From sequence record NC_048047.1: DNA of 64,000 bases; one strand, given 5' to 3'. Position 1 is the stretch's first letter; every line of letters starts with the position of its first letter. Shown one piece after another: positions 44,027-63,685 of this stretch. The notes under the pieces are model-generated. The model saw only the letters and a program-made list of their open reading frames with translations. It ran no database searches and was not told where the DNA came from. The position numbers and the translations under genes are program-made.

Positions 44027-44042
44027 CATCCCGCTGGCCGGG

Positions 44043-44258: not shown

Positions 44259-44262
44259 GCCC

Positions 44263-44356: not shown

Positions 44357-44657
44357 CTGACCCATTTTAGGGTTAATGTCGCGCCCTAACCCGATTTTGG
44401 GCGACACCCAGGCGAACGGGCGCCGGCCGGGTCGTGATCCCCGGCCGGTGGGTCAGTGGAGCAGCCAGAGCAGAAACGCCAGCGCCGCCAGTGACCAGCC
44501 GTTCAGCAATTTCAGGGTGGGCGCCTCTCTCGTCTGCCGTGGCCGCTCGCCACCCCTCATTCATCGCATACAAGAAAACTGTTGCCAAGCCCCAAAGATC
44601 GCTTGACAGCATAAAAGCCCAATGCGACAAGAGGCCATCCAAACGGGAGACACCCCA

Positions 44658-46192: not shown

Positions 46193-46213
46193 CGACAATC
46201 TGGAGCACATCTC

Positions 46214-46687: not shown

Positions 46688-46873
46688 TCCCAAGGCCCGC
46701 CTCCCCGGCGGGCCTTTTCTTGACCACCGCCTGGGGTTAACCTTAACGTCGCCTTAAGGTTAACCCGCCCAGGCCGGCGCCCAGGCGAAAAAGATTGCGA
46801 GAAACCTGTTGACACGCATGGAAGCCCTATGCGAGAACAGGGCACCAATTCAACGCCAGCCGGGAGACACCCC

Positions 46874-47455: not shown

Positions 47456-47459
47456 GACC

Positions 47460-47876
47460 ATGACCGGTTACACGATCAAGCTCGAAGTTCAGGTCAACCC
47501 GGCTGACAGCCTGGAGCAGGCGCGCAAGGACGTCGAGACCGCCATTATCAAGGCCGATCTTCCGGCCTGGATGGAATGGATGATCATCGACGCCGCGCCC
47601 CTGGCGCCGGTGATCGCGCCGGCCACGCGCTGGGCGACCTTCGTCGGTCAGGCCTGGATCAACGGCCACACGATGGAAGTGGACGACAGCCGCGTGAGCT
47701 ACGGTGTCACTGACGAGGAGTTTGACGAAAACGGCGGGGACGAGCCGGCCGACTTCGACGCCCTGGCCCAGGCCGCCCGCGCTCCCGACTGGGTGCGCAA
47801 CTGGTCAGGCCCCTTCGACATCTACATCTCGGACATTCCAGACGGGCAGGACCCGGATATTCCGGTTTTCGGCTAA
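47460..47876 (+). CDS. cassette hypothetical protein (acidic)
   Basis: GAGGAGG RBS. Confidence 0.75.
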   Translation: MTGYTIKLEVQVNPADSLEQARKDVETAIIKADLPAWMEWMIIDAAPLAPVIAPATRWATFVGQAWINGHTMEVDDSRVSYGVTDEEFDENGGDEPADFDALAQAARAPDWVRNWSGPFDIYISDIPDGQDPDIPVFG

Positions 47877-47945
47877 GGGTGCAAGAAAGCTGTTGACAGC
47901 ATAACAGCCCTATGCGAGAAAGGGTCATAGCAAGGAGACACCGCT

Positions 47946-48176
47946 ATGACCCCCAACCCGACCGAAGAGGGCAAGGCCGCCGCCCGCCAATGGCTGGCCA
48001 ACTCGACCAGCGAATGGGCGCCCGAGCCCAAGAACCCCTATCGCACCCTGGCCCGGTCGATGACCGCCCGCACCGACGAGGAACGCCGCTGGGACGCGGG
48101 CTATCAGCACATCCTCGACCTGGAATTCCCCGACGACGGCGCCGAGCAGCGCGCCGAACGCGCCTTTGGCTGCTAG
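47946..48176 (+). CDS. cassette hypothetical protein
   Basis: promoter 47893, AAGGAGA RBS. Confidence 0.75.
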   Translation: MTPNPTEEGKAAARQWLANSTSEWAPEPKNPYRTLARSMTARTDEERRWDAGYQHILDLEFPDDGAEQRAERAFGC

Positions 48177-48329
48177 AGAGGTCCGCCGGCTCACCCCGGC
48201 GGACTTTCCACCACCGCCCGGCGTTAACCTTAACGCCGCCTTAAGGTTACCCGCGAAAATAGTGCAAGAAAGCTGTTGACAGCATAGAGGCCCTATGCGA
48301 GAAAGGCTCATCGAAACGGGAGACACCCC

Positions 48330-48839
48330 ATGGACGACACCTATCCGCCCCTGACCCCCGGCCAGCAGGACGCCCTGGTCGCCTTCGCTGACCAGCATGG
48401 CGGCCTGGGCGAGGCCTGGAAGGAAGCCCTCGGCGACGCCTGGAGGACGTGCAGCGAGCCCGAGGCGCTCAAGGCCGACCTGCGGACCATCCGCAACACC
48501 TATGGCCCCTCCTGGCTCTATGATGAATACGCCTGGGGCTGGCGCCCGACCCTGCCGGCCTGGGAGCGCGCCGGGCGCTGGACCGACACCCCGCCCGAGC
48601 CGACGCCGGGCAAGGCCCGCTGGAGCGCCGCCTTCGACCCGCCGGCCATCGGCGAGCGCGTCCGGGTGACCACCAACGGCCTGGGCTGGGCCAAGGTCAC
48701 CGGCTACTTCGTCGAAGGCGACTGGCTGGGCGTGATCGTCAAGCTGGAGGCCCCGGCCGACTGGTATGTCAAACAGAACGGCGGCAACGTCCCCGGCCAC
48801 AGCTTCGGGACCGAGATCGCCCTGACCGACCCCGCGTGA
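48330..48839 (+). CDS. cassette hypothetical protein (two modules, C-terminal SH3-like)
   Basis: promoter 48276; LRTIRNTYGPSWL; PAIGERVRV. Confidence 0.75.
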   Translation: MDDTYPPLTPGQQDALVAFADQHGGLGEAWKEALGDAWRTCSEPEALKADLRTIRNTYGPSWLYDEYAWGWRPTLPAWERAGRWTDTPPEPTPGKARWSAAFDPPAIGERVRVTTNGLGWAKVTGYFVEGDWLGVIVKLEAPADWYVKQNGGNVPGHSFGTEIALTDPA

Positions 48840-49020
48840 CCTGGGCGGCCCTGGCTGGGAGACCAGCCGGGGCGACGCCTTGGCCGGCGCGGTTAACCTT
48901 AAGGCCGCGTTAAGGTTAACCGCCCGCGCCCTCCGCCCGGCGAAAGAAAATGCAAGAAAGCTGTTGACACGCATCCGAGACCTATGCGAGAAAGGCGCAT
49001 CGAACAACGGAGGCCCTTCC

Positions 49021-49863
49021 ATGGCCAAGCTTTTCAGCGATCTCCAAGACCTTGCCACCTCGACCTATGTCGTGCGCATCGTCGACAATGGCGGCGAGAG
49101 CGCCGACCGTTACACGATCGTCACCGCCGATGGCGACTATTACGCCTACAGCGCCAATCCCTCCCATCCCCAAGGCGTGGGCCTGAGCGGCGAGGGCATC
49201 GACCCGCAAGTTCTGGCCGACTGGGTAGAGCGCGGGCAGGCCATCGACCTGACCATCGGCGAACTACCCGAGGGCGCCGCCCGCTGCCTGCTGGCGTCGA
49301 TCAACGCCAGCGTCGAGGACTTCCTGGCCGCTGTCCTGGACCCGACGTCCAACGCCGTGGCCCCGACCCGCGAAAAGGCGGAGATCAACGAGGGCGTCAT
49401 GGATTGCTTCGGCAAGGGCATCTATCGTGTCGGCGAGGGTTTCGCCGTGCGTATGGATGGCATGGACGCGGGCGATGATCGCGGACCGTTCATGACCGCT
49501 GTCGATGCGGTCAAGGCCACCCTCCCCGATGAATACGCCTGGGCGGGCGAGGAATACCTGTCGCCGCGCGACATGACCAAGGTCACGCCCGAAGCCAAGC
49601 CGCTCGTCTTGGTTCACGCCCTGGAGGCCATTCGCGACTATGAATATCAGCGCGACACACCCGGCGCGTTTTTCGACGGCCTGCACAAGGACGACACTGA
49701 CGCGGGCCTGGGCATCGTGCGCCGCACGCGCTACCTGTCCAAGGTCACCGGTGATGCGACCATCGTCGGGCTGATCGGCGAGGCGCCGGCTTTCGCCCTG
49801 GCCCATGCGTGCCTCGACCAACTGTGGACCCTGGCGCAAGAGCGTTGGGAGGCGGGCCAGTGA
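49021..49863 (+). CDS. cassette hypothetical protein
   Basis: promoter 48964; DNGGESADRYTIV, NPSHPQGVG. Confidence 0.8.
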   Translation: MAKLFSDLQDLATSTYVVRIVDNGGESADRYTIVTADGDYYAYSANPSHPQGVGLSGEGIDPQVLADWVERGQAIDLTIGELPEGAARCLLASINASVEDFLAAVLDPTSNAVAPTREKAEINEGVMDCFGKGIYRVGEGFAVRMDGMDAGDDRGPFMTAVDAVKATLPDEYAWAGEEYLSPRDMTKVTPEAKPLVLVHALEAIRDYEYQRDTPGAFFDGLHKDDTDAGLGIVRRTRYLSKVTGDATIVGLIGEAPAFALAHACLDQLWTLAQERWEAGQ

Positions 49864-50099
49864 GCGCCCGCGAACGCCGCGCCCTCGCCGAACTGCTGGC
49901 CCTCTTCCATGCCGTCAATAGCGGCCATGTCAAGGGCCGCAACCCCTACGCCTTCCCGGCCGTCAAGCTCGCCAACGCGGCGTTGACGGGCGATCCGCTG
50001 GACGGGGGATTCCACGTCGCCGAAGCGCTGGACACCCTGCGCACGTCCGATGGCAAGGCGCTGCTATTCGACACCGAATTTCCCGAAGAAAGCGGTTGA
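49860..50099 (+). CDS. cassette hypothetical protein
   Basis: GTGA coupling; stop lies in the next -35 box. Confidence 0.65.
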   Translation: MSARERRALAELLALFHAVNSGHVKGRNPYAFPAVKLANAALTGDPLDGGFHVAEALDTLRTSDGKALLFDTEFPEESG

Positions 50100-50150
50100 C
50101 AGCATAAGGGGCCTATGCGAGAAAGGGTCATCAACGGAGACACCCCGCCC

Positions 50151-50291
50151 ATGTGGACCGACAAGACGTTCAAGACCCGGACCGCCAAGGAGGCCTGGAT
50201 CGCCCGCAACGAAGACCGCTATCAGATCGTCGAGATCGTGGTCTGCAACGCTTACGGCGTGTCCTACAAGCCCCTGCGACGCGTCTACTAG
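50151..50291 (+). CDS. 46-aa cassette protein
   Basis: promoter 50096, GGAGACACC RBS; translated by hand. Confidence 0.65.
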   Translation: MWTDKTFKTRTAKEAWIARNEDRYQIVEIVVCNAYGVSYKPLRRVY

Positions 50292-50302
50292 GAGACCCGC
50301 CC

Positions 50303-50494
50303 ATGATCCCCGACTCGGTCCGCAACCCCAAGGACCACTGGACCCCCATCGCCACCCGCGCCGAGGCGGACGCCCTGGCCTTCCGCTACAACCAAGACGA
50401 CGACGGCCCCGGCCTCTACGAGGTCCACGAAAAGGGCGCGACCTTCGCCATCGCCTACTATGACGAAGACGGCGTGTTCTGCGCCTACGTCTAG
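50303..50494 (+). CDS. cassette hypothetical protein
   Basis: AGGAGA RBS, terminator after. Confidence 0.7.
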   Translation: MIPDSVRNPKDHWTPIATRAEADALAFRYNQDDDGPGLYEVHEKGATFAIAYYDEDGVFCAYV

Positions 50495-50683
50495 CCGTCA
50501 CCTCGTCACCTTGAAGGCCGGCGCCGCTCTCCTGGCGCCGGCCTTTTCTTTGCGCCCGGCCGCCCGGTTAATCTTAAGGCGGCGTTAAGGTTAACCCGCC
50601 GCATCCCGCCCTGATGCAAAAAACCTGTTGACACGCATGGAAGCCCTATGCGAGAAAGACGACGAACACGGGAGACACCCCTT

Positions 50684-51688
50684 ATGACCACCGCCACCAT
50701 CGCCGGCGCCGAACACACGATGATCGGACAAGCCGCCTACCGCTCCACCCAGCGCCCGCATCAAGTGCAGGACATGGCCTATGGCGCGTTCCCGGCCGCC
50801 ACGTCGGACTCGCCCTTCGCCGTCAAGCCTGCCTGCGGCAAGACCCCGAGCGCGCGCGTGCTGGAGGACTTCGACCCCGCCGACGTCTTCACCATCAAGC
50901 CGCGTGATCGCGGCGACGGCTTCCTTGCGGTCGCCAACTTCGGCGGCTCTGAGGTGTCGTGGATCAGCGTCGCCGGCTATGGCGACACCGAAGACGCCGC
51001 GCGCGCCAACCTCATGGCCAAGTTCATCGACGATCGCGACGGCAAGAGCAAGTTTGGCCCCCATGAGCCGCTCAAGGGCTATGACTGGTCCTATAAGCTG
51101 GCGCCCTATTGGGACATGCTGGAGCGCGAGGCCGCCATTCGCCAGCCCTTCAAGCGCACGCTCTACCTGGGCAAGCTGAAGTCGGGCCGCCCCAATCCCA
51201 AGGGCTTTGACGTGTTCGTCGATGTCGAATGGACCGGCGAGCGCCTGAGTCTGTCGGGCGTCATCGGCCCCAAGGCCAATGGCAACGCCTGGGGCGGCTG
51301 TGGTCAGATCGTCGGCAGTCTTGCGCGCAAGGACTTTCTGGAGTTCGCCCCGTCCTGGCATTATGGCTCGGCCCTTGACGGTCTGGTCAAGGCCTGGACC
51401 CGCTGGCACCTGAACGACATGCGCGCCGGCACGCCTCGCCAGCAAGAACACCTGCGAGGCTATCAGGCCAAGCGCAACATTGAGCAGGCCAAGGCCGCCG
51501 GCGCCCACCATCTCGACGCCACCCGCGCCGAACTGGCGCGCGTCCATCTGGAGCCCGACACCTGGGAGCGCCGCAACGGCCGGCCCTATAGCTACGGCTC
51601 CGCATGGTTGCGCGAGGAGGTCCCCACCTTCGTTCTCGACTTCCTGCGCAATCTCCCCGCCCCCGTCAAAACCAGCCCCTGGAGGTAA
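50684..51688 (+). CDS. cassette hypothetical protein
   Basis: promoter 50628; WTRWHLNDMRAGT, YSYGSAWLREEVP. Confidence 0.8.
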   Translation: MTTATIAGAEHTMIGQAAYRSTQRPHQVQDMAYGAFPAATSDSPFAVKPACGKTPSARVLEDFDPADVFTIKPRDRGDGFLAVANFGGSEVSWISVAGYGDTEDAARANLMAKFIDDRDGKSKFGPHEPLKGYDWSYKLAPYWDMLEREAAIRQPFKRTLYLGKLKSGRPNPKGFDVFVDVEWTGERLSLSGVIGPKANGNAWGGCGQIVGSLARKDFLEFAPSWHYGSALDGLVKAWTRWHLNDMRAGTPRQQEHLRGYQAKRNIEQAKAAGAHHLDATRAELARVHLEPDTWERRNGRPYSYGSAWLREEVPTFVLDFLRNLPAPVKTSPWR

Positions 51689-51695
51689 CCCGCCC

Positions 51696-52130
51696 ATGGC
51701 CATCAACACCGCCGGCCTCGTCGGCAAGCTCAAGGAAGCCCTGGCCAGCGCGCCGAACCTGACCCTTTGGGCCAAGGAACGCGGCCTCTTCCACCAGAAC
51801 GTTTCGGCCGCCGCGCGCGGCGACACCGTGCCGCAAGACAGCATCGCCAAGGCCCTGGGCTATCGGCGCGTCCACGTCCAAGCCTATCTGGCGCCCGGCG
51901 AGGCCCTGCCGCTTCTGCCGCCCGGCTGGGAGGAAGTGGTTCCGGGCTCGGCGACCCCGGTCGACTGGAAGCCGCGCGACAAGACCGCCGAGCCGGCTCA
52001 TCGCCGCGTTGGCTCGCCTGAGCAAATGGCGCGCGCCCGCTCGCTTCGCCGGCAGGAAGACCCCGAGGCCGTGGCGGCGGTGCAGGAAGCCCTTGCCGAC
52101 GCCAAGGCCAAGCTGCGAAAAACCGGTTGA
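51696..52130 (+). CDS. Cro/XRE-like HTH protein
   Basis: GGAGG RBS; LTLWAKERGLFHQNVSAAARGDTVPQDSIAKALGY. Confidence 0.6.
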   Translation: MAINTAGLVGKLKEALASAPNLTLWAKERGLFHQNVSAAARGDTVPQDSIAKALGYRRVHVQAYLAPGEALPLLPPGWEEVVPGSATPVDWKPRDKTAEPAHRRVGSPEQMARARSLRRQEDPEAVAAVQEALADAKAKLRKTG

Positions 52131-52181
52131 CAGCATAAGGCGGCTATGCGAGAAAGGCTCATCACTTTCTGGAGCAAGCCC

Positions 52182-52391
52182 ATGGCCGCCTTCCTGATCA
52201 ACACCGATCTCAACGCCCTGGTCGAGGACATCGCCTATGACGTCGAGATGGAAGACCGCGCCGCCGAGGAACTCGATGGCATGGACTTTGGCGACCGCTG
52301 CTATTACGGCGACCGCGCCTATCATGGCCAGCTTGAGCTTGCCCGGATCATCGAAGCGGCCACCGCCGCCCATCCCATCCTGTACGCCTAG
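52182..52391 (+). CDS. cassette acidic hypothetical protein
   Basis: promoter 52127. Confidence 0.7.
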   Translation: MAAFLINTDLNALVEDIAYDVEMEDRAAEELDGMDFGDRCYYGDRAYHGQLELARIIEAATAAHPILYA

Positions 52392-52406
52392 CAGAGGAGG
52401 CGCCGC

Positions 52407-52619
52407 TTGACCCGTTACCGCACCGACTACAGCCAAGACGACGGCAAGACCGTCATTATCGAGGAAGGCCTGACCCGGACCGAGGCCATGCAAAAGGCCG
52501 CGATCCTGTCGCGCAAGCACGGGACCGCCTACGCCGTCGCCTCCGACGACAAGGGCCGCGACACTGGCCAAAGGGTCTATGCTGACGGCCGGTTCAGCTA
52601 CCAAGACGACAAGTTCTAA
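52407..52619 (+). CDS. cassette hypothetical protein
   Basis: GAGGAGG RBS, TTG start. Confidence 0.7.
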   Translation: MTRYRTDYSQDDGKTVIIEEGLTRTEAMQKAAILSRKHGTAYAVASDDKGRDTGQRVYADGRFSYQDDKF

Positions 52620-52778
52620 GGCAAGAGGCCCGGAGCGATCCGGGCCTCTTGTCTGTCCCGAGCCGCCCGTTAACCTTAACCCCCTGGGACGGGGCGTTAA
52701 CCGAACAATCTGCAAGAAACCTGTTGACACGCATCTGAGGCCTATGCGAGAAAGGCTCATCGAACAACGGAGGACGTC

Positions 52779-53486
52779 ATGTCCAAAACGTCTATTGATC
52801 CTGTGATCGCCCAAGCCCTCGCCGAACTGCGCCAAGGCCCGGTCATGGTCGATCATGGCCCCCAAGACCGCACCCAAGTCGTGAGCTTCGGCGCGACCCA
52901 AGCCCGGATGGCCAATGTCGCCCTCACGATCGAACAAGCCCTGTCGCAAAGCCCCGCGCCCTACGCCCTGGGCTGGTTGCTGGTCACTGAATATGACCGC
53001 CTGGGCGACAATTGGGGTGGCTTTCTGGGCGGCCCTCTCGATGAGGGGCAAACCCTCAAGGACGCTGACGAGGTGCTGGCGTGGTTCCGCGCCACCTTCC
53101 CCGAGGACCCGGAAGGCTTTGCCGGGCAGATGGCCGGCGCCCTGCCCAATGACGAGACCCGCGCCAAGATCGAAGCCGGCTACGCCGAGGCCCTGGCCAT
53201 CAAGGACACGGTCGCGCCCCTGGCCAATATCGGTTCGGCCGAGGCGGTCGCCGACATGATGTCCACCATGTTCGGCTCTGCTGTCAACGCTGCTCAGGCC
53301 CTGGGCTATCTCGTCACCACCCTGGGCGCGGGCCGCTTCGGCGTCACCCATGACGACGGCGCCACCCTGGCCACGCGCCTGGAAATCGACCACCCGACCC
53401 AAGAGGCCGCCGCCCGCGCCGCCCTGGTCTACCATGTCCAGCACCTGCAAGCCGACACCCTGGCGCTGGCCAATCTGAAGGACTGA
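52779..53486 (+). CDS. cassette hypothetical protein
   Basis: promoter 52724, GGAGGA RBS. Confidence 0.75.
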   Translation: MSKTSIDPVIAQALAELRQGPVMVDHGPQDRTQVVSFGATQARMANVALTIEQALSQSPAPYALGWLLVTEYDRLGDNWGGFLGGPLDEGQTLKDADEVLAWFRATFPEDPEGFAGQMAGALPNDETRAKIEAGYAEALAIKDTVAPLANIGSAEAVADMMSTMFGSAVNAAQALGYLVTTLGAGRFGVTHDDGATLATRLEIDHPTQEAAARAALVYHVQHLQADTLALANLKD

Positions 53487-53488
53487 CC

Positions 53489-54115
53489 ATGACCGCCGCC
53501 GCCTCTCTCTTCGAACAAGCCCAGATCGAAGCCGCGCAAGCCGCGATCGATCTCAACACCGCCAAGGTCGGGCTGGAAACCGAGGACTCCAGCCCTGGAA
53601 CCGACCTCTTCCACCTGCTGGGCTCGCTGCTGACCTGGGCGGACGCCTGGGGCGTGGACTTCGACGACATCCTGTCTCAGGTCCGCGAGCCGGTGAACGT
53701 CACCACGACCCTGACCCGCAATGATCCGGCGACCTATGGCCAAGATCAGCGGTTCGCCGCCATCCTGGCCAATCTCGACCAGCGCAATACCCCTTCCGTG
53801 CCGGTCCTGACCCGTGATGAGGCCGAAACCGAGGCCATGCGCGATCTCGCCGCCGTGGTCGGCAAGGTGATCAAGGTCCACGACATCACCGGCTATTTCG
53901 GCGAGACGGGCCAAGAGGACTTGCGCCCCCATGAAGGCGCGCCGGCCTTTTCGGTGATCGTCCTGCCGTCTGAGCGCGGCGATGTCATCCACTGGAATGA
54001 CGAGCATCTGGACGTGCGCTGGAACGTCACCCCCGCGCCGGGCGAAACCCGCCTCTATGAACTGCGCTCGCTGTGGGTGTTTGGGCGCGGCTACGTCGTC
54101 GAGAAGGAGGGCTAA
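53489..54115 (+). CDS. cassette hypothetical protein
   Basis: AAGGA RBS; DLFHLLGSLLTWAD. Confidence 0.75.
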   Translation: MTAAASLFEQAQIEAAQAAIDLNTAKVGLETEDSSPGTDLFHLLGSLLTWADAWGVDFDDILSQVREPVNVTTTLTRNDPATYGQDQRFAAILANLDQRNTPSVPVLTRDEAETEAMRDLAAVVGKVIKVHDITGYFGETGQEDLRPHEGAPAFSVIVLPSERGDVIHWNDEHLDVRWNVTPAPGETRLYELRSLWVFGRGYVVEKEG

Positions 54116-54118
54116 GGC

Positions 54119-54439
54119 ATGGCCATGCCCCTGGGCTTGCGGACCACCGCCACGAGCTACGCCATCGACGTGGATGATGACCAGTTCCTGGCCATGATCC
54201 AGGCCGAGAGCTACAAGGGCGGCGACTTCGAACCGACCCTGTTCGACAAGCTGCAAAAGACCGACGCCCGCGACATCGAGTATAACGGCCACTTCGGCGC
54301 GTCCGTCTATTTCACCCTCAACGAGGAGGACGACACGCCCGCCCTCCGCGCCGAACTCGCCCGGCTGATCGCCGAACACCTCACCCTCTGTGTCGCCCAC
54401 ATGGCGACCTACGACAAGGACGCGCCCGATGCTGACTGA
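54119..54439 (+). CDS. cassette acidic hypothetical protein
   Basis: GGAGG RBS; DIEYNGHFGASVYF. Confidence 0.75.
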   Translation: MAMPLGLRTTATSYAIDVDDDQFLAMIQAESYKGGDFEPTLFDKLQKTDARDIEYNGHFGASVYFTLNEEDDTPALRAELARLIAEHLTLCVAHMATYDKDAPDAD

Positions 54440-54728
54440 GGCCTCCATTCGTCTCGCCCCGTCCGACCTGCAAACGACCTTCGTCGTGGTCGGCAAGGTG
54501 CATCTGCATTTCTTCCTGACCACCCTGGTGGGCTTTCGCTGTCCGCGCCTGGGCGCGGTGCGCAACCCCGAGGGCCACAACGCCGGCGCCCGCGCCAAGG
54601 CCCATCTCCAGGCCCTGGGCTACTACGCCGAGGGCACGGGTAAAACCGCCACCGAAGAAGACTTTCAGCGCCTCGCCATGGCCGCGCTCGCCGGCTCCAG
54701 TGGTCCTGACTATCTCCTGTTGAGATAA
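54429..54728 (+). CDS. cassette hypothetical protein
   Basis: AAGGA RBS, overlap. Confidence 0.65.
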   Translation: MLTEASIRLAPSDLQTTFVVVGKVHLHFFLTTLVGFRCPRLGAVRNPEGHNAGARAKAHLQALGYYAEGTGKTATEEDFQRLAMAALAGSSGPDYLLLR

Positions 54729-54844
54729 GACCGCCTCCCACGTCTAGGGCTGTCACGAATCCCCCCATCTATGACAGCCCAGACGCCCGTTTAGTCTTCC
54801 CTGTACTCTATTGCGCCAGTATCGGCGCGGAAAGTGATGCGCCT

Positions 54845-54907
54845 ATGAAGCTCCTCGAAGGTGGCGGACTGCTGGCCCTGTGCTTCCTTTTCTGGCTCCT
54901 CCACTGA
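54845..54907 (+). CDS. 20-aa hydrophobic peptide MKLLEGGGLLALCFLFWLLH (copy 1)
   Basis: same protein sequence as 58497..58559 with only synonymous differences. Confidence 0.75.
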   Translation: MKLLEGGGLLALCFLFWLLH

Positions 54908-54971
54908 CAAGGCTGTTGACAGCATAAAGGCACTATGCGAAAAGGGGTCATCGCCACCGGAGACACCCGCG

Positions 54972-55238
54972 ATGACCGAATATGACGACTACGGCCAAGA
55001 CGCCTATTTCGACCACCTCCACGATCAGGCCGTCGATGAGGCTTTCGAGCGCCACGCCGACGACGCCTATGAGGACGACCTAGGCGACGAGGACCCCGAC
55101 CTCGAAATCCCCGATGAGGAAGACGAGGAGGAGGGCCTTCGCCGGGCCGAAGGGCTCATGCCCTGGGCGACCCCCGAAGGCGTCGAGCCTGGGCAGTTCC
55201 CGCGCCGGGCCTATGACGACGACGAAATCCCGTTCTGA
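54972..55238 (+). CDS. 88-aa highly acidic protein with SSB-like C-terminal tip (DDDEIPF)
   Basis: promoter 54916; about 33 of 88 residues D/E; ends YDDDEIPF. Confidence 0.75.
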   Translation: MTEYDDYGQDAYFDHLHDQAVDEAFERHADDAYEDDLGDEDPDLEIPDEEDEEEGLRRAEGLMPWATPEGVEPGQFPRRAYDDDEIPF

Positions 55239-55444
55239 TCTCCTCCCTTCGAAAGGCCCCGCGCGGGCCTTTCTTTTTGCCCCGCGCCTGGGGTTAACCT
55301 TAAGGCGGCGTTAAGGTTAACCCGGACCATTTTTCGTCTTTTGTGTCGGGCCATTTTTCGCTTTTCGTGTCGAGGTGCAAGAAAGCTGTTGACAGCATAA
55401 AAGCCCTATGCGAGAAAGGCTCATCGCAACCAAGGAGCCCGACC

Positions 55445-55636
55445 ATGGGTCTCAAGATCGAAATCGACACCGGCAACGACGCCTTTCAGGGTGTGGCCGG
55501 CGAGCACTGCGCCAGCCTCCTGCATGAGGTGGCCCGCAAGCTCGACCAAGGCGCCCGCGCCGGCAATATCTACGACGGCAACGGCAACAAGGTCGGGACC
55601 TACGAACTCGACCACACCGACGCCCCGGAGTCGTAA
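55445..55636 (+). CDS. cassette conserved phage protein
   Basis: promoter 55389; KIEIDTGNDAF...YDGNGNKVG. Confidence 0.75.
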   Translation: MGLKIEIDTGNDAFQGVAGEHCASLLHEVARKLDQGARAGNIYDGNGNKVGTYELDHTDAPES

Positions 55637-55639
55637 GCC

Positions 55640-55963
55640 ATGGCCTATTTCGACGTCATCACCACGGTGCGCGTTGAGGTCGAGGACATCCCCGATCTCT
55701 TCGCCGCCGCCCTGGCGCGCGCGGTCAAGGACGGCATGGAAGAGGGCGACGCCCGCGACCTGCTGACCAACTCCGACCCCCTGGGCCGCCCCGACATCAA
55801 GTCGTGCCTGATCATGCTGTTTGATCCGGGCGTGAGCCCGGACGGCACGTCGATCAGCGGCACGGAAGTCCAGCGCCCCGACATGGACGAAGACGACGCC
55901 ATGGACGCCTACGAGGACGCCCACGGCGAAGACGAGGAAGGCGACGGCGATGACGAGGACTAA
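55640..55963 (+). CDS. cassette acidic protein
   Basis: D/E-rich tail. Confidence 0.7.
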   Translation: MAYFDVITTVRVEVEDIPDLFAAALARAVKDGMEEGDARDLLTNSDPLGRPDIKSCLIMLFDPGVSPDGTSISGTEVQRPDMDEDDAMDAYEDAHGEDEEGDGDDED

Positions 55964-56300
55964 GGGCAAGTCGCGCGTTCCCCAACGCCTGCTGATCGCC
56001 AGTCGGCCGACCCTGGTCGCCGGCCCCTCGCCAGCCACCCGCCGCCACTGGTGGGACCTTCTGGACAGCGCGGGCCACCCGCGCGACCTTGAGGCCCTGC
56101 TGGTCGTCACCATCGACCAAGACGCGGCCGAAACCGTCGTCGCGGTCCTGCCGCTCGCCGCCGCCGACTACAGCGAAGAAGCCGTCAAGGCTGACGCCCT
56201 GGTCGCCGCCCACACCCGCCCCCGCAGCCCTGGCAAGCGCGACGCGCTCAACGCCTATGTGCTGCATGTCAATGACCCCCATGCGGAGCATCAACCGTGA
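55950..56300 (+). CDS. cassette hypothetical protein
   Basis: overlap coupling. Confidence 0.6.
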   Translation: MTRTKGKSRVPQRLLIASRPTLVAGPSPATRRHWWDLLDSAGHPRDLEALLVVTIDQDAAETVVAVLPLAAADYSEEAVKADALVAAHTRPRSPGKRDALNAYVLHVNDPHAEHQP

Positions 56301-56755
56301 GCTATTCCGGCCCGATCACCATTTCGCAAGGCCTGCGCTGGCGCCTCGATAGCTACGGCAACGGCGCGGCCTATGCCTTCTATGACCTGTCGGCCGGCGC
56401 CAGCGTCTGGCTTGAAGGCGACGACGCCACCACGTTCCGCGACGACTACGACAACGCCGAAAAGCGCCGGCCGCAAGACGAGCCTGACGAGATTATGGGC
56501 CATCTGTGGCATGATCACGAATACGGCGCCGCCGCCAAGGTCCGGGCCGTCACCGTGCGCCGGATCATCCGCGAAGACACCGTGATCCTGTTGCGCCCCG
56601 GCGAGAGCGAGGCCGACGCCAAGGAACGGGCGATCTTCAATCAATCCTCGCTCAAGTGGGACACCTACGATTGCGAGTATAGCGCCGACGCCGCCGAGGA
56701 CGCCCCCGCCGAGGAATACGCCTATCTGCTGACCGGCCACCCCTGCGCCATCTAA
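56297..56755 (+). CDS. cassette acidic hypothetical protein
   Basis: GTGA coupling; YGNGAAY, VWLEGDDA. Confidence 0.7.
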   Translation: MSYSGPITISQGLRWRLDSYGNGAAYAFYDLSAGASVWLEGDDATTFRDDYDNAEKRRPQDEPDEIMGHLWHDHEYGAAAKVRAVTVRRIIREDTVILLRPGESEADAKERAIFNQSSLKWDTYDCEYSADAAEDAPAEEYAYLLTGHPCAI

Positions 56756-56898
56756 GCCAAGGCCCGCCCCTCCCTTCAGGCAAGGAAGGCGGCGGGCCTT
56801 GCCCTGGGCGATCGCGGTTAACCTTAACGTGCAAGAAATCTGTTGACACGCATTGAGGCCATATGCGAGAAAGGACCACCGCAACGGGAGAGACCCCC

Positions 56899-57207
56899 AT
56901 GACTGCCCAAGCCGTTCTGACCGCCCGCCTTGACCGCGCCGTCGCCGTGATCTCTGGCGACATCCCCAAGAGCCGGCGCAAGGTGCGCAAGGCCCGCCGC
57001 GCCTTCCAGCGCGCCCTGGAAGGGATGGACATCCCGACCTATGTGGCGTGGATCAACCACCCCGACTCGTTCATCGCCCTCACCGACGATGTCGAGCACT
57101 GGGCGCAAAGCGGGATCACCACCGCCGCCCAACTGGGCGCCTATCTCGACGGCTGCGCCCGCCATGAGGCCCGCAAGGACTTGATGAGCGGCTACCTCGA
57201 CGACTAG
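56899..57207 (+). CDS. cassette hypothetical protein
   Basis: promoter 56843. Confidence 0.7.
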   Translation: MTAQAVLTARLDRAVAVISGDIPKSRRKVRKARRAFQRALEGMDIPTYVAWINHPDSFIALTDDVEHWAQSGITTAAQLGAYLDGCARHEARKDLMSGYLDD

Positions 57208-57301
57208 GCGGCAAAAAGGCCCGTCCCCTGGTGGGGCGGGCCTTGTCCTGTCCGATCGGGATTAACCTTAACGCGAGATTAAGGTTAACGCAGCCTTAAG
57301 G

Positions 57302-57544
57302 TTAAGTGGCGTTCTTGCGCGTCGTGGCCTGGGGATTGGCCTTCAACCATGCGTCGGCTTCCGTCCGGGTCGAGAACGGCGCCCCGCCAATGCCCTGCGT
57401 CCCGTCGTCCCATTGGATGGTCCAACCCACGTTCTTGATTTCCCAATCTTCGGCCACGCCGTGGGGGATCGGGGCGTGTACGCCAATACGGGTAAACGGC
57501 GCCCGCTTCAGTTGACGGACACGCGCCGGGATCACTTGCGGCAT
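57302..57544 (-). CDS. inverted cassette hypothetical protein
   Basis: AGGA RBS on minus strand; own leftward promoter; WTIQWDDG...FSTRTEADAWL. Confidence 0.65.
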   Translation of the reverse strand: MPQVIPARVRQLKRAPFTRIGVHAPIPHGVAEDWEIKNVGWTIQWDDGTQGIGGAPFSTRTEADAWLKANPQATTRKNAT

Positions 57545-57597
57545 TTCAGGGATTTCCTATTGACAAAGGCCTTGCCCCATGGGCGGCCCGAAAGGCG

Positions 57598-57625
57598 ACT
57601 GTATCAAGCGGCGCCGCCGTGTCAA
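57598..57625 (-). promoter_or_regulatory. leftward promoter
   Basis: TTGACA-N16-TACAGT on the minus strand. Confidence 0.6.
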
Positions 57626-57725
57626 GAAACGCGACACAGACTGAGAAAGCGGTTGACACGCATCTAAGCCCTATGCGAGAAAGATCAGGCACGGCGCACC
57701 CCCGCGCCCCTGGGAGACACCCCGC

Positions 57726-58496
57726 ATGGACCTGACCACGTTTTCGGCCTCGGCTGAATTTGTTCTCTGCAACAAGCCGGTGAAGATCACCGTCAAGCCC
57801 GCCGGCCGACCGCTCTACCTGTCGTTTTCCATCGAACAGATCGGCATGATCGGCGGTAGCGACGAATTGATGAGCGAGGCCGAACAACACGACGTTGAGG
57901 ACTTGGTGACGGTCTTGACCATCGCCGACGTCCTGTCCCTCAAGCCCATCGAGACCTATAACGACGAAGACCGCGACGCCGTCGAGAGCGTGCGCTATGC
58001 GCTGATCATGCTCAACGGCGAGCGCTACGCTTCGGCCGTCGCGTTCGAGGATGTCGGCGAGGCCGATTTTTCCAATCGCGACGACACCATTGACACCCGC
58101 CAAATCGTCGAGCGGGTCGAGGTGCTTCGGAGCGCCCTGGAGACGGCCGGCGTCGAGACCGGCGACCTCGCCGCCCTGGAAGCCCTCGACGAAGAAGAGG
58201 CCGTGACGGACCAAGACCAGCGCGAGACCTTCAACGAGATTCGCGAGGAATATCTGATCCTGGCGCGCATGGTCGAGGAGGGCGCCAACTACGGCGAGGA
58301 TTGGACGTTCGGCGCCACCCTGGTCCGCGAATCCTACTTCACCGAGTTCGCGCAAGAAGAGTGCGAAAGCCTGGGCTACATCGCCAAGGACTTCCCGTCG
58401 TGGATTTCCATCGACTGGGAAAAGACCGCCAACACGATGAAATCCGACTATACCGAAATCGACTTTGACGGCGTGAGCTACTACGTTCGCGCCTAG
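57726..58496 (+). CDS. ArdA-like antirestriction (DNA-mimic) protein
   Basis: very acidic; C-terminal ESYFTEFAQEECESLGYI...PSWISIDWEKTA...DYTEIDFDG. Confidence 0.55.
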   Translation: MDLTTFSASAEFVLCNKPVKITVKPAGRPLYLSFSIEQIGMIGGSDELMSEAEQHDVEDLVTVLTIADVLSLKPIETYNDEDRDAVESVRYALIMLNGERYASAVAFEDVGEADFSNRDDTIDTRQIVERVEVLRSALETAGVETGDLAALEALDEEEAVTDQDQRETFNEIREEYLILARMVEEGANYGEDWTFGATLVRESYFTEFAQEECESLGYIAKDFPSWISIDWEKTANTMKSDYTEIDFDGVSYYVRA

Positions 58497-58559
58497 GTGA
58501 AGCTCCTCGAAGGCGGCGGCCTGCTCGCGCTCTGCTTCCTCTTCTGGTTGCTTCATTAA
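58497..58559 (+). CDS. 20-aa hydrophobic peptide (copy 2)
   Basis: GTG directly after the upstream TAG; terminator after. Confidence 0.75.
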   Translation: MKLLEGGGLLALCFLFWLLH

Positions 58560-58656
58560 CCCCGGCCGGCGTCCATGACCTGGGCGCCGGCCTTTTCTTT
58601 GCGCCGCGATCGGGGTTAACCTTAAGGCGGCGTTAAGGTTAACGGCGGGCCTGGGA

Positions 58657-58752
58657 GGAAAGGCGTCAAGGCCGCGAGCTAGGATTACACGCGATGGCTT
58701 AGCCGGCGTCCAGCCGGCGGCGCCTTCGACCACCGCGAGGCGGCCTTGACCC
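58657..58752 (-). ncRNA. candidate ~95-nt structured small RNA
   Basis: minus-strand TTGACA-N15-GCGAGAT promoter (58785-58758); 11-bp closing stem 58665-75/58740-50; nested stems; no evident ORF. Confidence 0.45.
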
Positions 58753-58871
58753 TCGTAATCTCGCCGACCCGTCGCCCGGTGTCAACCGTTTTCTTTCTCC
58801 AAGAATTCTGTTGACACGCATCGAAGCCCTATGCGAGAAAGGGTCATCTTCAACGCCTGGAAAGAAAATCC

Positions 58872-59528
58872 ATGCCCCGCACCGTCACCAAACAGGTCTT
58901 CACGTTCAAGGAGTTGAACGACAAGGCCAAGGCCAAGGCTATCGAGTGGTATCGCGGCCTCAACGACCAAGACTCCGGTTGGTGGGAGTTCGTCTATGAC
59001 GAAGCCGACCGCATCGCCGACGCCTTCGGGATCACCCTGCGCCGCAAGGAAGCCGGCAAGCCCAATAGCGGCCCGGACATCATGTTCACCGGCTTCTGGA
59101 GTCAAGGCGACGGCGCCTGTTTCCAAGGTCGCTACGAGTCGCCCCAAACCCCGGCCGTCGAAGCCTTCGCCGCCCTGGGAATCGAAGACGACACGCTCAA
59201 GGCTCTGGCCGCCCGTCTGGACGCTCTGAGCGCCAAGGTTCGCCTGATCACCACGGTCAAGCACTCTGGCCACTACTACCACGAGTATTGCACCGACTTC
59301 GAAACCGAACGCATGGTTCCCGACGAAGCCGGCGACGCCTTCGACCCTTACGACTTCGAGCACGAAGACGAAAAGGAACTGATCGACATTCTGCGCACCT
59401 TCATGAAGTGGATTTATCGCCAGCTTGAAGTCGTCGAGGAAGACCGCAATTCCGACGAAACGATCAGCGAATATCTGACCGACTCTGATTACGAGTTCGA
59501 GGCGGACGGCTCGCCGACCAACGACTAA
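58872..59528 (+). CDS. conserved acidic protein (FWSQGDG family)
   Basis: promoter 58811; VFTFKELNDKAKAKAIEWYR, FTGFWSQGDGACF. Confidence 0.75.
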   Translation: MPRTVTKQVFTFKELNDKAKAKAIEWYRGLNDQDSGWWEFVYDEADRIADAFGITLRRKEAGKPNSGPDIMFTGFWSQGDGACFQGRYESPQTPAVEAFAALGIEDDTLKALAARLDALSAKVRLITTVKHSGHYYHEYCTDFETERMVPDEAGDAFDPYDFEHEDEKELIDILRTFMKWIYRQLEVVEEDRNSDETISEYLTDSDYEFEADGSPTND

Positions 59529-59700
59529 GCCAAGCCCGCCGCGCCCGGCCTTTTCGCCGGGCGCGTGTCGGGTTTTGGTTTTCCAAGGTCTTGTTAAGGT
59601 TAACGAAAAAAGCCCTCCAGCGACCTGAGAAACTGCAAGAAAAATGTTGACTGCATCCAAGCCCTATGCGAGAAAGGCTCATCGCAACGGGAGACACCCC

Positions 59701-59988
59701 ATGACGACCCCGACCAAGAAGCGCCGCAAGCGCTACCCGCCCAAGAGCGACGCGGCTAAGGCTCGCGCCGCCGCCAAGAGCAAGGCGTTCTTCGCCAAGC
59801 ACGCGCTCAAGGCCACCGAGGCCACGATCGCCGCCATGAAGGCCGGCGACCAAAAGGCCGTCCAACGCCACGCCAAGGACGCCCGGCGCCTGAACCGCTG
59901 GATGATCCACAAGCGCGACATCGCCGCCGCCTTCGCGGCCCTTTTCGACCTGCGCGCCGCGCGCCTCGCCCTGGAGCTTGCCGCATGA
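59701..59988 (+). CDS. cassette basic protein
   Basis: promoter 59647; K/R/A-rich. Confidence 0.7.
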   Translation: MTTPTKKRRKRYPPKSDAAKARAAAKSKAFFAKHALKATEATIAAMKAGDQKAVQRHAKDARRLNRWMIHKRDIAAAFAALFDLRAARLALELAA

Positions 59989-60200
59989 CCCGTCGCCCTG
60001 CCTATCTGACCGTCCTGGGCGGTATCGGCCTCATCCTCGCCAGCCTCGCGCTTTCGGCCGCCAGCGCCCCGGAAAAGCGGGTTCTCGTGGGTCAATACTG
60101 CGACGGCGACCTTGTGCGCCTCTACGGCCTGGAAGACGGCGAGGAAGCGGCCGAGGCCTGCGCCATCGTCGAAGTCCACGCCCTGCCCAAGGGCCTTTGA
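59985..60200 (+). CDS. small exported or membrane protein
   Basis: ATGA coupling; signal-like N-terminus. Confidence 0.65.
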   Translation: MTRRPAYLTVLGGIGLILASLALSAASAPEKRVLVGQYCDGDLVRLYGLEDGEEAAEACAIVEVHALPKGL

Positions 60201-60202
60201 CC

Positions 60203-60541
60203 ATGGAACGCCTCAACGTTCACGTGCTGACCATCACCTATGACAGCGGCAACCCCGTCCCGCCGTTTGTCGCTCTGGCCATGTCCAAGGAGGAGCTTGA
60301 CGACAACCTGCAAGCCAAGGCGCGCGAGGAAGTCGAAAACCTCTATTTCGAGGAAGACGACCTCTTTGACGACCTCGCCAAGGTCCTGACCGCCGAACGC
60401 GTCGCCGAGCTTCAGCCCCTGGGCCTGGACGCCATCGGCCTCCTGACCCCGGTCGAAGTCGTCACCATGGCCAAGCAATTTGCGTCGATCACGCCAAGCT
60501 TTGACGTGCTTCCGCTCTACCTCGAATCGACCCCGACCTGA
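60203..60541 (+). CDS. cassette acidic hypothetical protein
   Basis: ORF in cassette. Confidence 0.7.
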   Translation: MERLNVHVLTITYDSGNPVPPFVALAMSKEELDDNLQAKAREEVENLYFEEDDLFDDLAKVLTAERVAELQPLGLDAIGLLTPVEVVTMAKQFASITPSFDVLPLYLESTPT

Positions 60542-60621
60542 CGCAAGAAAGCTGTTGACAGCATAATTCGCCTATGCGAGAAATGACTGTCAACGGCGAT
60601 TCCCGCCGCATGGAGACACCC

Positions 60622-60966
60622 ATGAAGCTGATCAAACACGACGTTCTCGACCACGGCCGCGCCTCGACCCTGCGCAACGCCCTGGGCACGGCCCTGGAAC
60701 GATACGCCGAAATCGCCAAGGACTTCGAAGGCTACGCCATCGAATACGCGGCCCTGGACGAGGCGGGCAAGCAAGCCTGGAAGGCCACCAATAGCTGGAT
60801 CAATCCGCGCGCCCTGCCGGACCTGAAAAAGCAATTCGAGCGCCAAGTCACCGAGGTGCAAGACCTCATCGACTGGCTGGACGGCGACAAATTCCAAGAC
60901 GAAAACGGTCAATACCCGGAAAACACCGAGTTCACCGTCGTCGCCGGCCTGATCCGCGACTTCTAA
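60622..60966 (+). CDS. cassette hypothetical protein
   Basis: promoter 60555, GGAGACACC RBS. Confidence 0.75.
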   Translation: MKLIKHDVLDHGRASTLRNALGTALERYAEIAKDFEGYAIEYAALDEAGKQAWKATNSWINPRALPDLKKQFERQVTEVQDLIDWLDGDKFQDENGQYPENTEFTVVAGLIRDF

Positions 60967-61161
60967 ACGCCCTGGCCAAGGCCCGCCCTCACGGCGGGCC
61001 TTTTCCTTGACCCCGCGCCGCTGTTAACCTTAACGTGCAAACGTTCGCCGATTAACCTTAACGAGACATGTCCGTTCCGTTAACCCTGTCGTGCAAAAAA
61101 GCTGTTGACTCGCATCCAAGCCCTATGCGAGAAAAGGCCATCAGCAACGGGAATGACCCCC

Positions 61162-61572
61162 ATGACCAAACCCGAAATGACCCCGGAAGAACGTCGAGCC
61201 CAGCTTGACGACATGCTCAAAATCTGGCGCGAGCGCGTCGAGACCGCCAAGCAACGCCTGTCGATCAACGTCCTGGTCGGCCGAGGCTTCCTCTGCGTCC
61301 TGGAGCGCGAGCCCAGCGGCATGGCCATCGGCCCGACCGAGGATGACAAGGGCTGGCGCCTTGTGGCCATGAACCCCTGGTTCACCGGCTGCGTCAAATG
61401 GGCCAAGGCCGACGCCGAACAAGTCGCCGCGCACTGGAACGCCAACCTCACCGGCGACGCGGCCCTCTACTGCGTGGTCAAGGTCATGCACTATCGCGCC
61501 GTCCTCGAAGAGATGGTCACCAAAGGCGAGGAGATGATCGCCTTCATGGAAGACCGCTATAAGGCCGCCTGA
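61162..61572 (+). CDS. cassette hypothetical protein
   Basis: promoter 61105; alternative start at 61153. Confidence 0.7.
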   Translation: MTKPEMTPEERRAQLDDMLKIWRERVETAKQRLSINVLVGRGFLCVLEREPSGMAIGPTEDDKGWRLVAMNPWFTGCVKWAKADAEQVAAHWNANLTGDAALYCVVKVMHYRAVLEEMVTKGEEMIAFMEDRYKAA

Positions 61573-61760
61573 TCTTGACGCCCTCCGGCTCCGGCCGGAG
61601 GGTTAATTTTTGGTCGACCCGGCGTCAAGGTTAACGCGCTCCAGCCTGGGGTTAACCTTAACCCGCAACCGTTTGCACGTTAACCATTTGGCGCAAGAAA
61701 CCTGTTGACACGCATTTCTGTCCTATGCGAAAAGAGGCCATCCAATCAACGGAGGCCCGC

Positions 61761-62417
61761 ATGGCCAGCCCTGAAGATATCGCCATCGTCCAAGCCGCGC
61801 CGGTCAGTTTCGACCTCGAAGCGTGGGAGGAAGAAAACGGCCAATATGCCCAAGACCACTGGCGCCACCTCAACTACGCCTTTGAGATCAAGGGCTATAA
61901 GCACATGTTCACGCAAGATCAGCGCGCCGCCGCCGATCGCCTGATCGCCGAATATGAGGAAGCCCAAGACGACCACCGCGAAACCTACCGCGCCGAAAGC
62001 GACGCCGTTTTCTGGGCGGCCGACGCCTTCGCTCGCCAGTACATCGGCACGGCGCTCTGGACGGGCGTTAGCTACCCCATGGGCGATGATCGCGGCGGAA
62101 GCGACAGCTACTATGACGGCGAATCGGCCTGGATCACGCCCAAGACCCTGCGCGAGATGATCGAAGATTGCGACGCCTTCCAGCGCGACAACGTCGCCGC
62201 CCTGGCCAAGGCCTATGCGTCTGACGTCTGGATCGAAGGCGAGCGCTACAACGCCAGCAACGCCGGTCACGATTTTTGGTTGACCCGCAACGGTCACGGC
62301 GTCGGCTTTTGGGATCGTGGCCTAGGCGAGGTCGGCGAGACCCTTTCCGAAGCCGCCCGCAAGGTCGGAGAATACAGCCTAGCCCTTGACGACAACGGCG
62401 AAATCAGCCGCATGTAA
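61761..62417 (+). CDS. conserved phage protein (GHDFWLTRNGHG family)
   Basis: promoter 61705; AGHDFWLTRNGHGVGFWDR. Confidence 0.8.
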   Translation: MASPEDIAIVQAAPVSFDLEAWEEENGQYAQDHWRHLNYAFEIKGYKHMFTQDQRAAADRLIAEYEEAQDDHRETYRAESDAVFWAADAFARQYIGTALWTGVSYPMGDDRGGSDSYYDGESAWITPKTLREMIEDCDAFQRDNVAALAKAYASDVWIEGERYNASNAGHDFWLTRNGHGVGFWDRGLGEVGETLSEAARKVGEYSLALDDNGEISRM

Positions 62418-62579
62418 CCCCGGCAAAGGCCCGCTTGACAGCGGGCCTTTTTCGTGCCTGCGCCTGGGGTTAACCTTAACGCCACCCCGCTCCGCCTTAA
62501 CGCTCTTTTCTGCAAGAAAACAGTTGACTCGCATCCGCGCCCCATGCGAGAAAAGGTCATCAACCACGGAGCGCGGCAC

Positions 62580-62954
62580 ATGGCCAAGCAAGAACAACTT
62601 GAAATCGCCCTGGTCCTGCTGGACGAGCACAAGGCCAAGATCGGCGCCCCTCGCGCCTTCACCTACGGCGAAGTCATCGAGGCGTACCGCGACGCGGGCG
62701 CCCTGATCAGCGCCGAGGTCCGCTTGCAGCGGATCGCCGAAAACGAGTGCAACGGCTACCGCGACGAGACGGCCGAAAAGCTCGATGAGCGCCGCCGTCA
62801 GACCCTCGAAGCCAAGGCCGGCGAAATCGCCAAGCGCTACGGCGTGGCCCTGACGTTCGGCGGCGACCCGCGCGGATCGGCCCTCAAGATCAAGACCCCG
62901 CACACGGGCCGTTACAACGGCTTTGGCGGGCGTGAGGATGGATGGGCCGTCTAG
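62580..62954 (+). CDS. conserved phage protein (GDPRG family)
   Basis: promoter 62524; LQRIAENECNG, FGGDPRG. Confidence 0.75.
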   Translation: MAKQEQLEIALVLLDEHKAKIGAPRAFTYGEVIEAYRDAGALISAEVRLQRIAENECNGYRDETAEKLDERRRQTLEAKAGEIAKRYGVALTFGGDPRGSALKIKTPHTGRYNGFGGREDGWAV

Positions 62955-63021
62955 GCCCATTCTGACCCCTTCCACCCCTGTAGCGCGTCCCCTCTCAACC
63001 CCTGGCCCTAGGAGACACCCC

Positions 63022-63192
63022 ATGGCCCGCACGACCATCCACACCCGCACCGACAAGGCCAATCGCGAGGCGCTGACCCCGTGGGAATATGAGCGCCAGC
63101 ACCGCGCCGACAAGAAAGCCGCCAAGTCCTGGCGCACCGATCGCCAAGGCCGCCGCGCCCTGGCCTCTTCGGACGCCTTCAAGGCCCACTAA
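63022..63192 (+). CDS. small basic protein
   Basis: AGGAGACACC RBS. Confidence 0.65.
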   Translation: MARTTIHTRTDKANREALTPWEYERQHRADKKAAKSWRTDRQGRRALASSDAFKAH

Positions 63193-63286
63193 ATCGGCCT
63201 CGAAAAAAGTTCGGCTCGATGCGAGAAACCTGTTGACTCGCATCGAGCCCCTATGCCATAAAGGGTCATCAAACGGAGACACCGAC

Positions 63287-63451
63287 ATGACCCACTTCCA
63301 ACGCGCCACCGAAGACCAAGTCACCGTCGCCCACCACACCGTTTCGGGCGGTGAACTGACCGTCACCACCCGCCCCCTGGCCCGCCCGGTCTACCGCCTG
63401 AACGGCTTCAAGATCAGCGCCGCCGACGCCGCCCGCAAGCTGGCCGCCTAA
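63287..63451 (+). CDS. cassette small protein
   Basis: promoter 63233, terminator after. Confidence 0.65.
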   Translation: MTHFQRATEDQVTVAHHTVSGGELTVTTRPLARPVYRLNGFKISAADAARKLAA

Positions 63452-63685
63452 GACCCCTCCCCTAGAAGGCCCCCTCCCTGGAGCGGGGCCTTTTTCGTGG
63501 CCGTTAGGCAGGCGTTAGGGTTAACCGGTAGGGTGAATTCGTTAACCTTAATGGGGCGTTAAGGTTAACCCAGCCAGCCCAGGCTGTTAACCATGTAGGC
63601 GAAGAAAGTGCGATCTCGTGTAAGAAAGCTGTTGACTGCATAAGAGCCATATGCGACAAAGGGTCATCAGCAACGGAGCTACCCG

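Follow-up and report, generated by a model that had tools for sequence, protein, structure and literature searches.

The DNA analysed here, a 64,000-nucleotide (nt) stretch of record NC_048047.1 that we call the window, is a perfect match to the final 64,000 bases of Caulobacter phage CcrBL9, a jumbo phage of the genus Bertelyvirus (MH588546.1, 322,272 bp), and at two places it carries very small open reading frames (ORFs), c1 and c2, for one and the same 20-residue hydrophobic peptide. Two diverged paralogs, c3 and c4, are present in the same genome, and related phages carry orthologs; the way in which all of these differ from one another leaves us with high confidence that the mini-ORFs are protein-coding. 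As judged from sequence comparison, the CcrBL9 peptides appear to make up a genus-specific family, probably among the shortest conserved phage genes with clean evolutionary support. As for what they do, we give about an even chance to a genus-specific tiny membrane peptide that would reside in the inner membrane and act in trans. The two ORFs from which the analysis started are:

54845..54907, plus strand: c1, a 20-codon ORF (ATG...TGA) for a hydrophobic peptide, present in CcrBL9, CcrSC, RB23 and BL47; an ancestral paralog.
58497..58559, plus strand: c2, a 20-codon ORF (GTG...TAA) for the same peptide as c1, present only in the CcrBL9/CcrSC lineage.

A sequence-only reading had claimed that these two stretches encode an identical, unannotated peptide under purifying selection, and both 63-nt stretches indeed translate as it said. 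Codon-by-codon comparison bears out that 9 of the 19 internal codons differ, all silently, and that the start (ATG/GTG) and stop (TGA/TAA) codons differ as well; codon 18 carries two of the silent differences, which brings their total to 10 bases over 9 codons. When 10 substitutions were placed at random 200,000 times, the peptide never came through unchanged, and the same differences, read in any of the other five frames, would cause 7–10 amino-acid changes each. Synonymous divergence (pS) between c1 and c2 is about 0.62, near saturation, with nonsynonymous divergence (pN) of 0–0.02, and their similarity runs exactly from start codon to stop codon, with unrelated flanks on either side. Neither ORF is a feature of GenBank record MH588546.1, in which c1 falls between gp022 and gp023 and c2 directly 3' of gp031.

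The third copy, c3, was located by a local tblastn scan on the minus strand at 44515-44453; it is 65% identical to c1 and ends in ...LWLLH-stop. The fourth came from a search with a hidden Markov model (HMM), run on the complete CcrBL9 genome (loci L006-L010 together with the window) translated in all six frames; it returned no copies beyond c1–c4.

44453..44515, minus strand: c3, a 20-codon ORF (CTG...TGA); this diverged paralog occurs in each of the four Bertelyviruses examined.
Record 182126-182179 (L009 12427-12480), minus strand: c4, a 17-codon ORF with an ATG start in the core genome, beginning MRLI... and ending ...LWLLH-stop.

The right copy of a 22,260-bp direct terminal repeat (DTR) occupies window positions 41741-64000, and all of its content therefore occurs twice per packaged genome. 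Three of the four loci (c1, c2 and c3) are inside the DTR and c4 is in the core genome outside the window, and the packaged CcrBL9 genome holds seven copies of the peptide gene. Locus c4 is placed between gp255c and a promoter-like TTGACA element of a type unlike the DTR units. The four Bertelyviruses examined were CcrBL9, CcrSC, RB23 and BL47. CcrSC carries c1–c4, with an identical c1 protein and conservative changes in the others (one in c2, two in c3, one in c4), while RB23 and BL47 have c1 and c3 and lack c2 and c4; the blastn statistics of phages C1, C2, J4 and two further Bertelyviruses are those of RB23. This distribution indicates that c1 and c3 are ancestral to the genus, whose CcrBL9/CcrSC lineage later acquired c2 and c4.

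Comparison of orthologs extends the evidence for coding beyond the c1/c2 pair. Substitutions summed over six pairs fall on codon positions 1, 2 and 3 in the ratio 16:2:32, and those at position 1 are mostly Leu CTN/TTR synonyms or L/F/I exchanges. The pN/pS ratio is low in every orthologous pair, as in CcrBL9 versus RB23 (0.155/0.69 for c1 and 0.097/0.51 for c3). GC content at third codon positions (GC3) is 0.80–0.90 in the mini-ORFs, against 0.84 in ten neighbouring genes and an intergenic GC content of 0.59. Between CcrBL9 and RB23 the c1 ORF is 73% identical and the 60 nt upstream only 38%, which makes the mini-ORFs islands of conservation. Orthologs, extra paralogs, codon-position periodicity, GC3 and initiation signals thus agree with the earlier claim of purifying selection on a translated peptide below the length of the ORF track.

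The encoded peptides are 17–20 residues long. Each begins with a basic N-terminal segment (M-K/R-L-L/I) and closes with an invariant C-terminal LW(L/I)LH; the centre varies (EGGG, NGWS or a deletion), and the apolar run measures exactly 14 residues in every copy. The single-helix, hydrophobic character ascribed to the peptide at the outset is in keeping with its composition, from which both the mean Kyte-Doolittle (KD) value of 1.3–2.1 and the 14-residue apolar run are taken, and it would essentially form one predicted hydrophobic helix. The Cys residue is not conserved and is Ala in c3, for which reason a lipoprotein signal (LALC) was dropped as a candidate; a double-glycine leader was dropped since the segment before GGG is too short for such a leader. 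That the C-terminal His serves as a Lon-type degron or decoy we take to be a remote idea.

Although the four loci encode related peptides, their expression signals have little in common. The features around c3 are:

44564..44588, minus strand: promoter-like c3 element in which TTGGCA is followed by TATGCGA, sharing the 18-nt register of the promoter repeats of the DTR; kept in CcrSC and RB23.
44535..44553, minus strand: invariant, non-coding 19-nt element of the c3 leader with a 5-bp hairpin inside; identical in CcrBL9, CcrSC and RB23.
44524..44531, minus strand: Shine-Dalgarno (SD) sequence of c3, GAGAGAGG in CcrBL9 and AAGGAGG in RB23, 7–8 nt 5' of the CTG.
44423..44448, minus strand: hairpin a few nt 3' of the c3 stop; in RB23 the stem sequence is wholly different and the loop is conserved.

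Locus c3 is hence laid out as a complete mini-gene, with a DTR-type promoter, leader, SD sequence, ORF and hairpin and a stand-alone predicted transcript of ~140 nt, and its CTG start is kept in CcrBL9, CcrSC, RB23 and BL47. The leader contains 1- and 2-nt indels, so that no two of the aligned phages (CcrBL9, CcrSC and RB23) have it in the same frame with respect to the ORF, which shows that translation starts at the CTG and that the 19-nt element is a nucleic-acid signal. On the same grounds a 35-codon, ATG-initiated version of c3 was ruled out. A long-range pairing of leader and ORF that was predicted in CcrBL9 was not reproduced in RB23, and we do not rely on it.

The setting of c2 is defined by the gene before it and the terminator behind it:

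57726..58496, plus strand: gp031, 256 aa, PHROG 25535; its TAG abuts the GTG of c2, in frame.
58564..58592, plus strand: strong intrinsic terminator with a 12-bp stem and a T-run, beginning 4 nt 3' of the c2 stop.

Here there is no SD sequence, and the GTG base-pairs with the 3' end of c2 itself (z = -4.3). The arrangement resembles the classic layout of termination-reinitiation coupling, and gp031, whose sole match is PHROG 25535 (unknown function), is the likely source of ribosomes for c2. Locus c1 is flanked by two features:

54747..54780, plus strand: hairpin between gp022 and c1, with a conserved stem and a loop that differs from phage to phage.
54916..54946, plus strand: gp023 promoter repeat, which starts 8 nt past the c1 stop in CcrBL9 (19 nt in RB23).

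Only a weak GGAAAG precedes the c1 start, and in CcrBL9 as well as in RB23 this region shows less structure than its shuffled controls; 75.4% of Caulobacter genes lack an SD sequence and use unstructured start regions instead (PMC4117421). In the core genome, c4 has a canonical SD sequence (GGAGG) 6 nt before its ATG and a stop codon 4 nt from the next SD sequence, and a single long structure buries the c4 SD together with the SD and start of gp255c (z = -2.6 in CcrBL9, -3.5 in CcrSC), an organization consistent with an SD-led upstream ORF of gp255c.

RB23 preserves what seems to be the state of two of these loci before the peptide gene arrived. Its gp031 homolog (gp035) ends at the same residue, and the stop codon is followed immediately by the same terminator; c2 is therefore a clean 63-nt insertion between the gp031 stop and the terminator. 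Likewise, the RB23 promoter 5' of the gp255c homolog leads directly into that gene, and c4 with its SD sequence is therefore an inserted cassette. On this comparison of genomes, c2 and c4 are precise cassette insertions into what appear to be unrelated contexts.

The terminal repeat that houses c1, c2 and c3 is rich in short transcription units. It contains an array of ~20 near-identical host-type promoter elements, each ~25 nt 5' of a gene, and many of the promoter units end with a terminator followed by a TTAA-N7-TTAA box. The promoter-like repeat is 31 nt long (TTGACAGCAT...CCTATGCGAGAAAGG), with ~20 sites over window positions 44603-63662, and marks out early transcription units that are very short. 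Palindromes of the form GGTTAACCTTAAGG...TTAAGGTTAACC stand directly 3' of terminators and hold perfect TTAA-N7-TTAA CtrA boxes (window 55294-55320, 57262-57305, 58616-58642 and others). Sites for CtrA are enriched in the DTRs of phiCbK-like and Bertelyvirus phages, with which the CcrBL9 boxes agree, and these DTRs are thought to carry early-infection-deciding genes under the control of CtrA, a host cell-cycle regulator (PMC9437464).

In the mode of action that we propose, the peptide would be made mostly early in infection, would insert in the host inner membrane with its N-terminus in the cytoplasm, and would act there in trans by binding a specific membrane-embedded host or phage protein, rather than through non-specific membrane damage. 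Early production is suggested by the DTR promoter array and the CtrA boxes (PMC9437464). Action in trans is suggested by the fact that the four loci share only the peptide and that copies were gained in unrelated contexts, and the insertion of the c2 and c4 cassettes in such contexts fits selection for a larger amount of product; the strictness of the C-terminal motif speaks for a specific partner over generic membrane damage. Expression would differ by locus, with its own promoter, SD and weak CTG at c3, reinitiation from gp031 at c2, unstructured non-SD initiation at c1 and an SD-led upstream ORF at c4. The weak but conserved CTG of c3, together with the guarded starts of the c2 and c4 ORFs, further suggests that production may be deliberately limited. 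A superinfection-exclusion factor, a depolarising toxin and an inhibitor of a host membrane protein, the roles put forward in the sequence-only reading, are all candidate functions, and the present results favour none of them over the others. Several observations weigh against this membrane peptide acting in trans: on its own, a 14-residue apolar run is short for crossing a membrane; c1 is downstream of a hairpin and has no recognisable promoter of its own; and two features, namely that three of the four stop codons are 3–5 nt from a hairpin or SD sequence and that the last five residues are the most conserved, fit a cis-acting nascent peptide too.

Such a regulatory peptide acting in cis, as a portable leader or arrest cassette, is the explanation to which these last two features lead. 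The nascent chain, especially LW(L/I)LH by the stop codon, would slow or stall the ribosome, which would then mask the 5' arm of the hairpin (c2, c3) or open the structure over the SD sequence of the next gene (c4), and transcription read-through or downstream translation would thereby be tuned. A 20-residue peptide at termination would still be wholly within the ribosome exit tunnel, the distance from stop to hairpin is 4 nt at c2 and a few nt at c3 (where the spacing is kept in RB23 despite a different stem), conservation is strongest at the C-terminus, and translation of c4 would open the one structure that buries its own SD and the SD and start of gp255c in CcrBL9 and CcrSC. We nevertheless regard this as rather unlikely, as c1 has no downstream RNA structure, being followed instead by a DNA promoter (8 nt away in CcrBL9, 19 nt in RB23) in a region less structured than shuffled sequence, and as the N-terminal residues and the entire hydrophobic run are conserved too; moreover, ordinary genes often end beside terminators, simple coupling requires no particular peptide sequence, and no Rfam leader family matches. 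In a bolder variant, which we think improbable, LW(L/I)LH-stop would arrest the ribosome, possibly in sensing a host metabolite or state, and a 54–63-nt module would have been copied to four junctions (with two hairpins, one promoter and one structured gene start, each downstream of the module), so coupling unrelated early genes to one signal.

The remaining explanations fare worse against the same evidence. A module like the type I toxin-antitoxin systems, in which a membrane-damaging toxin (c3, perhaps others) would be held down by an antisense or trans RNA at the 19-nt leader element, accounts well for c3, with its stand-alone ~140-nt transcript, structured invariant leader, weak CTG in all four Bertelyviruses examined and strong 3' hairpin; the size and hydrophobicity of the peptide are also those of type I toxins, and DinQ, a single-transmembrane peptide under antisense RNA control, provides a precedent (PMC3567139). 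We see only a slim chance for it, given that consensus scans found no promoter repeat or sigma-70-like site opposite c1, c2 or c3 (an unrecognised promoter could escape them), that no known toxin family matches, that the predicted long-range pairing of c3 is confined to CcrBL9 in its comparison with RB23, and that it is not obvious why a strictly lytic jumbo phage would need an addiction module. It is extremely improbable that c2 is no separate gene and merely a C-terminal membrane anchor of gp031 reached by TAG read-through: c2 does abut the gp031 stop in frame, but a start abutting a stop is in frame automatically, and c1, c3 and c4 are free-standing with starts of their own. Read-through was rejected on the C-termini of homologs, since RB23 gp035 and PHROG 25535 end at the last residue of gp031 without a tail, and on the phage's set of 28 tRNAs, in which no suppressor tRNA is found. 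The chance that the ORFs are instead an untranslated DNA or RNA element, such as a protein-binding site or structured RNA, is similarly negligible; they do sit in repeat-rich regulatory intergenic DNA, but their substitutions have a third-position pattern, their other frames are unconserved, their GC3 is gene-like, their SD sequences are correctly spaced and Rfam has no match. Nor do the ORFs have the position expected of a holin or other lysis protein gene beside the endolysin: the lysozyme gene gp180 (record 123730-124365) is far from all four loci, none of which is in the lysis cassette.

Searches for relatives point to a narrow distribution. No Pfam or PHROGs family, and no described toxin family, matched c1 or the 35-codon c3 frame at E <= 0.1, Rfam had nothing at the loci, including no leader family, and both queries were absent from a collection of 15 billion proteins. 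Scans with degenerate codon patterns over IMG/VR, 185,579 species genomes and metagenomes gave real matches only in CcrBL9 and CcrSC, although divergent forms could escape; no host homolog was found with the codon pattern used, which more divergent host forms could likewise escape. No family member turned up in CcrPW (Colossusvirus) or phiCbK (Shapirovirus), of which the left genome ends were scanned. The remaining pattern matches are due to chance, being on contigs of 28–56% GC, inside longer frames or non-hydrophobic. One such low-GC match, ending ...LLLGCVLILLFFLLW(F/L)LH-stop, recurs on >20 marine contigs (L038-L078) and two IMG/VR contigs, and we presume it to be a single frame of some conserved gene from an abundant marine virus, with no relation to the CcrBL9 family. 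The IMG/VR scan returned c4 of CcrSC and not that of CcrBL9, though the latter fits the pattern; the stored contig may be incomplete.

Among characterized systems, the closest functional analogy is SidA of Caulobacter crescentus, a 29-aa, SOS-induced inner-membrane division inhibitor that acts on FtsW and exemplifies that such tiny effectors work in Caulobacter (PMC4211646). SidA and the phage peptide share the same host cell and a very small, essentially single-helix, hydrophobic form, and SidA is non-enzymatic and binds a membrane protein, a likeness that is one of function only; the phage peptide, however, is shorter (17–20 aa), multi-copy and phage-encoded. Type I toxins of the Ibs, TisB, Ldr and DinQ class resemble it in length (17–30 aa), extreme hydrophobicity and weak or guarded starts, and c3 adds a short dedicated transcript with a structured leader, whereas the phage family has no Pfam match or antisense partner found in consensus promoter scans, and its strict C-terminal motif and four different contexts are atypical for the class. 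Bacterial small membrane-protein regulators are likewise single-helix peptides that are routinely missed by annotation, and the known ones modulate larger membrane proteins (PMC12648545). They are mostly 30–50 aa long and chromosomal, unlike the phage family of 17–20 aa, which is phage-borne and amplified in a terminal repeat. Nascent peptides of the tryptophanase-leader type act at their own stop codon, and the phage ORFs are similarly short, with key residues at the C-terminus and a stop just before a termination or translation-start signal (c2, c3 and c4); c1, in contrast, has no such downstream signal, and the phage peptide is conserved and hydrophobic throughout, not only in its last residues. 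Taken together, these comparisons would place the peptides in a new, genus-restricted family within a known kind, that of tiny single-helix membrane peptides, in which they appear notable for size, copy number and four modes of expression.

Several further observations concern the surrounding DNA. Three paralogous 657-nt genes, gp005, gp032 and gp038, occupy window positions 45375-46031, 58872-59528 and 61761-62417, and their presence indicates a general tendency towards gene duplication in the terminal repeat; gp032 matches PHROG 5162, and the RB23 and BL47 counterparts are labelled Pham177. In phage BL47 (L013 25791-29984), a three-gene unit (171, 192 and 195 nt) is repeated five times in tandem at the inner end of the terminal repeat. 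Beside c3, a gene-free 1.25 kb (window 43203-44452) carries several repeat arrays, namely a 27-nt unit present 3.7 times (43832-43932), GGTTAAC/TTAAGG repeats (44091-44193) and a 10-nt AAATCAGCGA unit present 5.9 times (44263-44321), which may serve as arrays of protein-binding sites or as a signal for replication or packaging. Elsewhere in the genome, ARAGORN predicted a permuted (two-piece) transfer-messenger RNA with a tag ending ...KLAA at L008 29219-29651 (MH588546.1 ~149018-149450), in a gap without any feature in GenBank record MH588546.1.

The recovery of this family, which gene callers had overlooked, illustrates that codon-aware comparison of intergenic repeats recovers micro-genes missed by annotation, in phages of which almost no DTR gene has a known function. 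Amplification to seven copies per packaged CcrBL9 genome implies that dosage matters, and the peptide offers a synthesisable, 20-residue candidate for the means by which a jumbo phage may manipulate the Caulobacter envelope or its own early gene expression.

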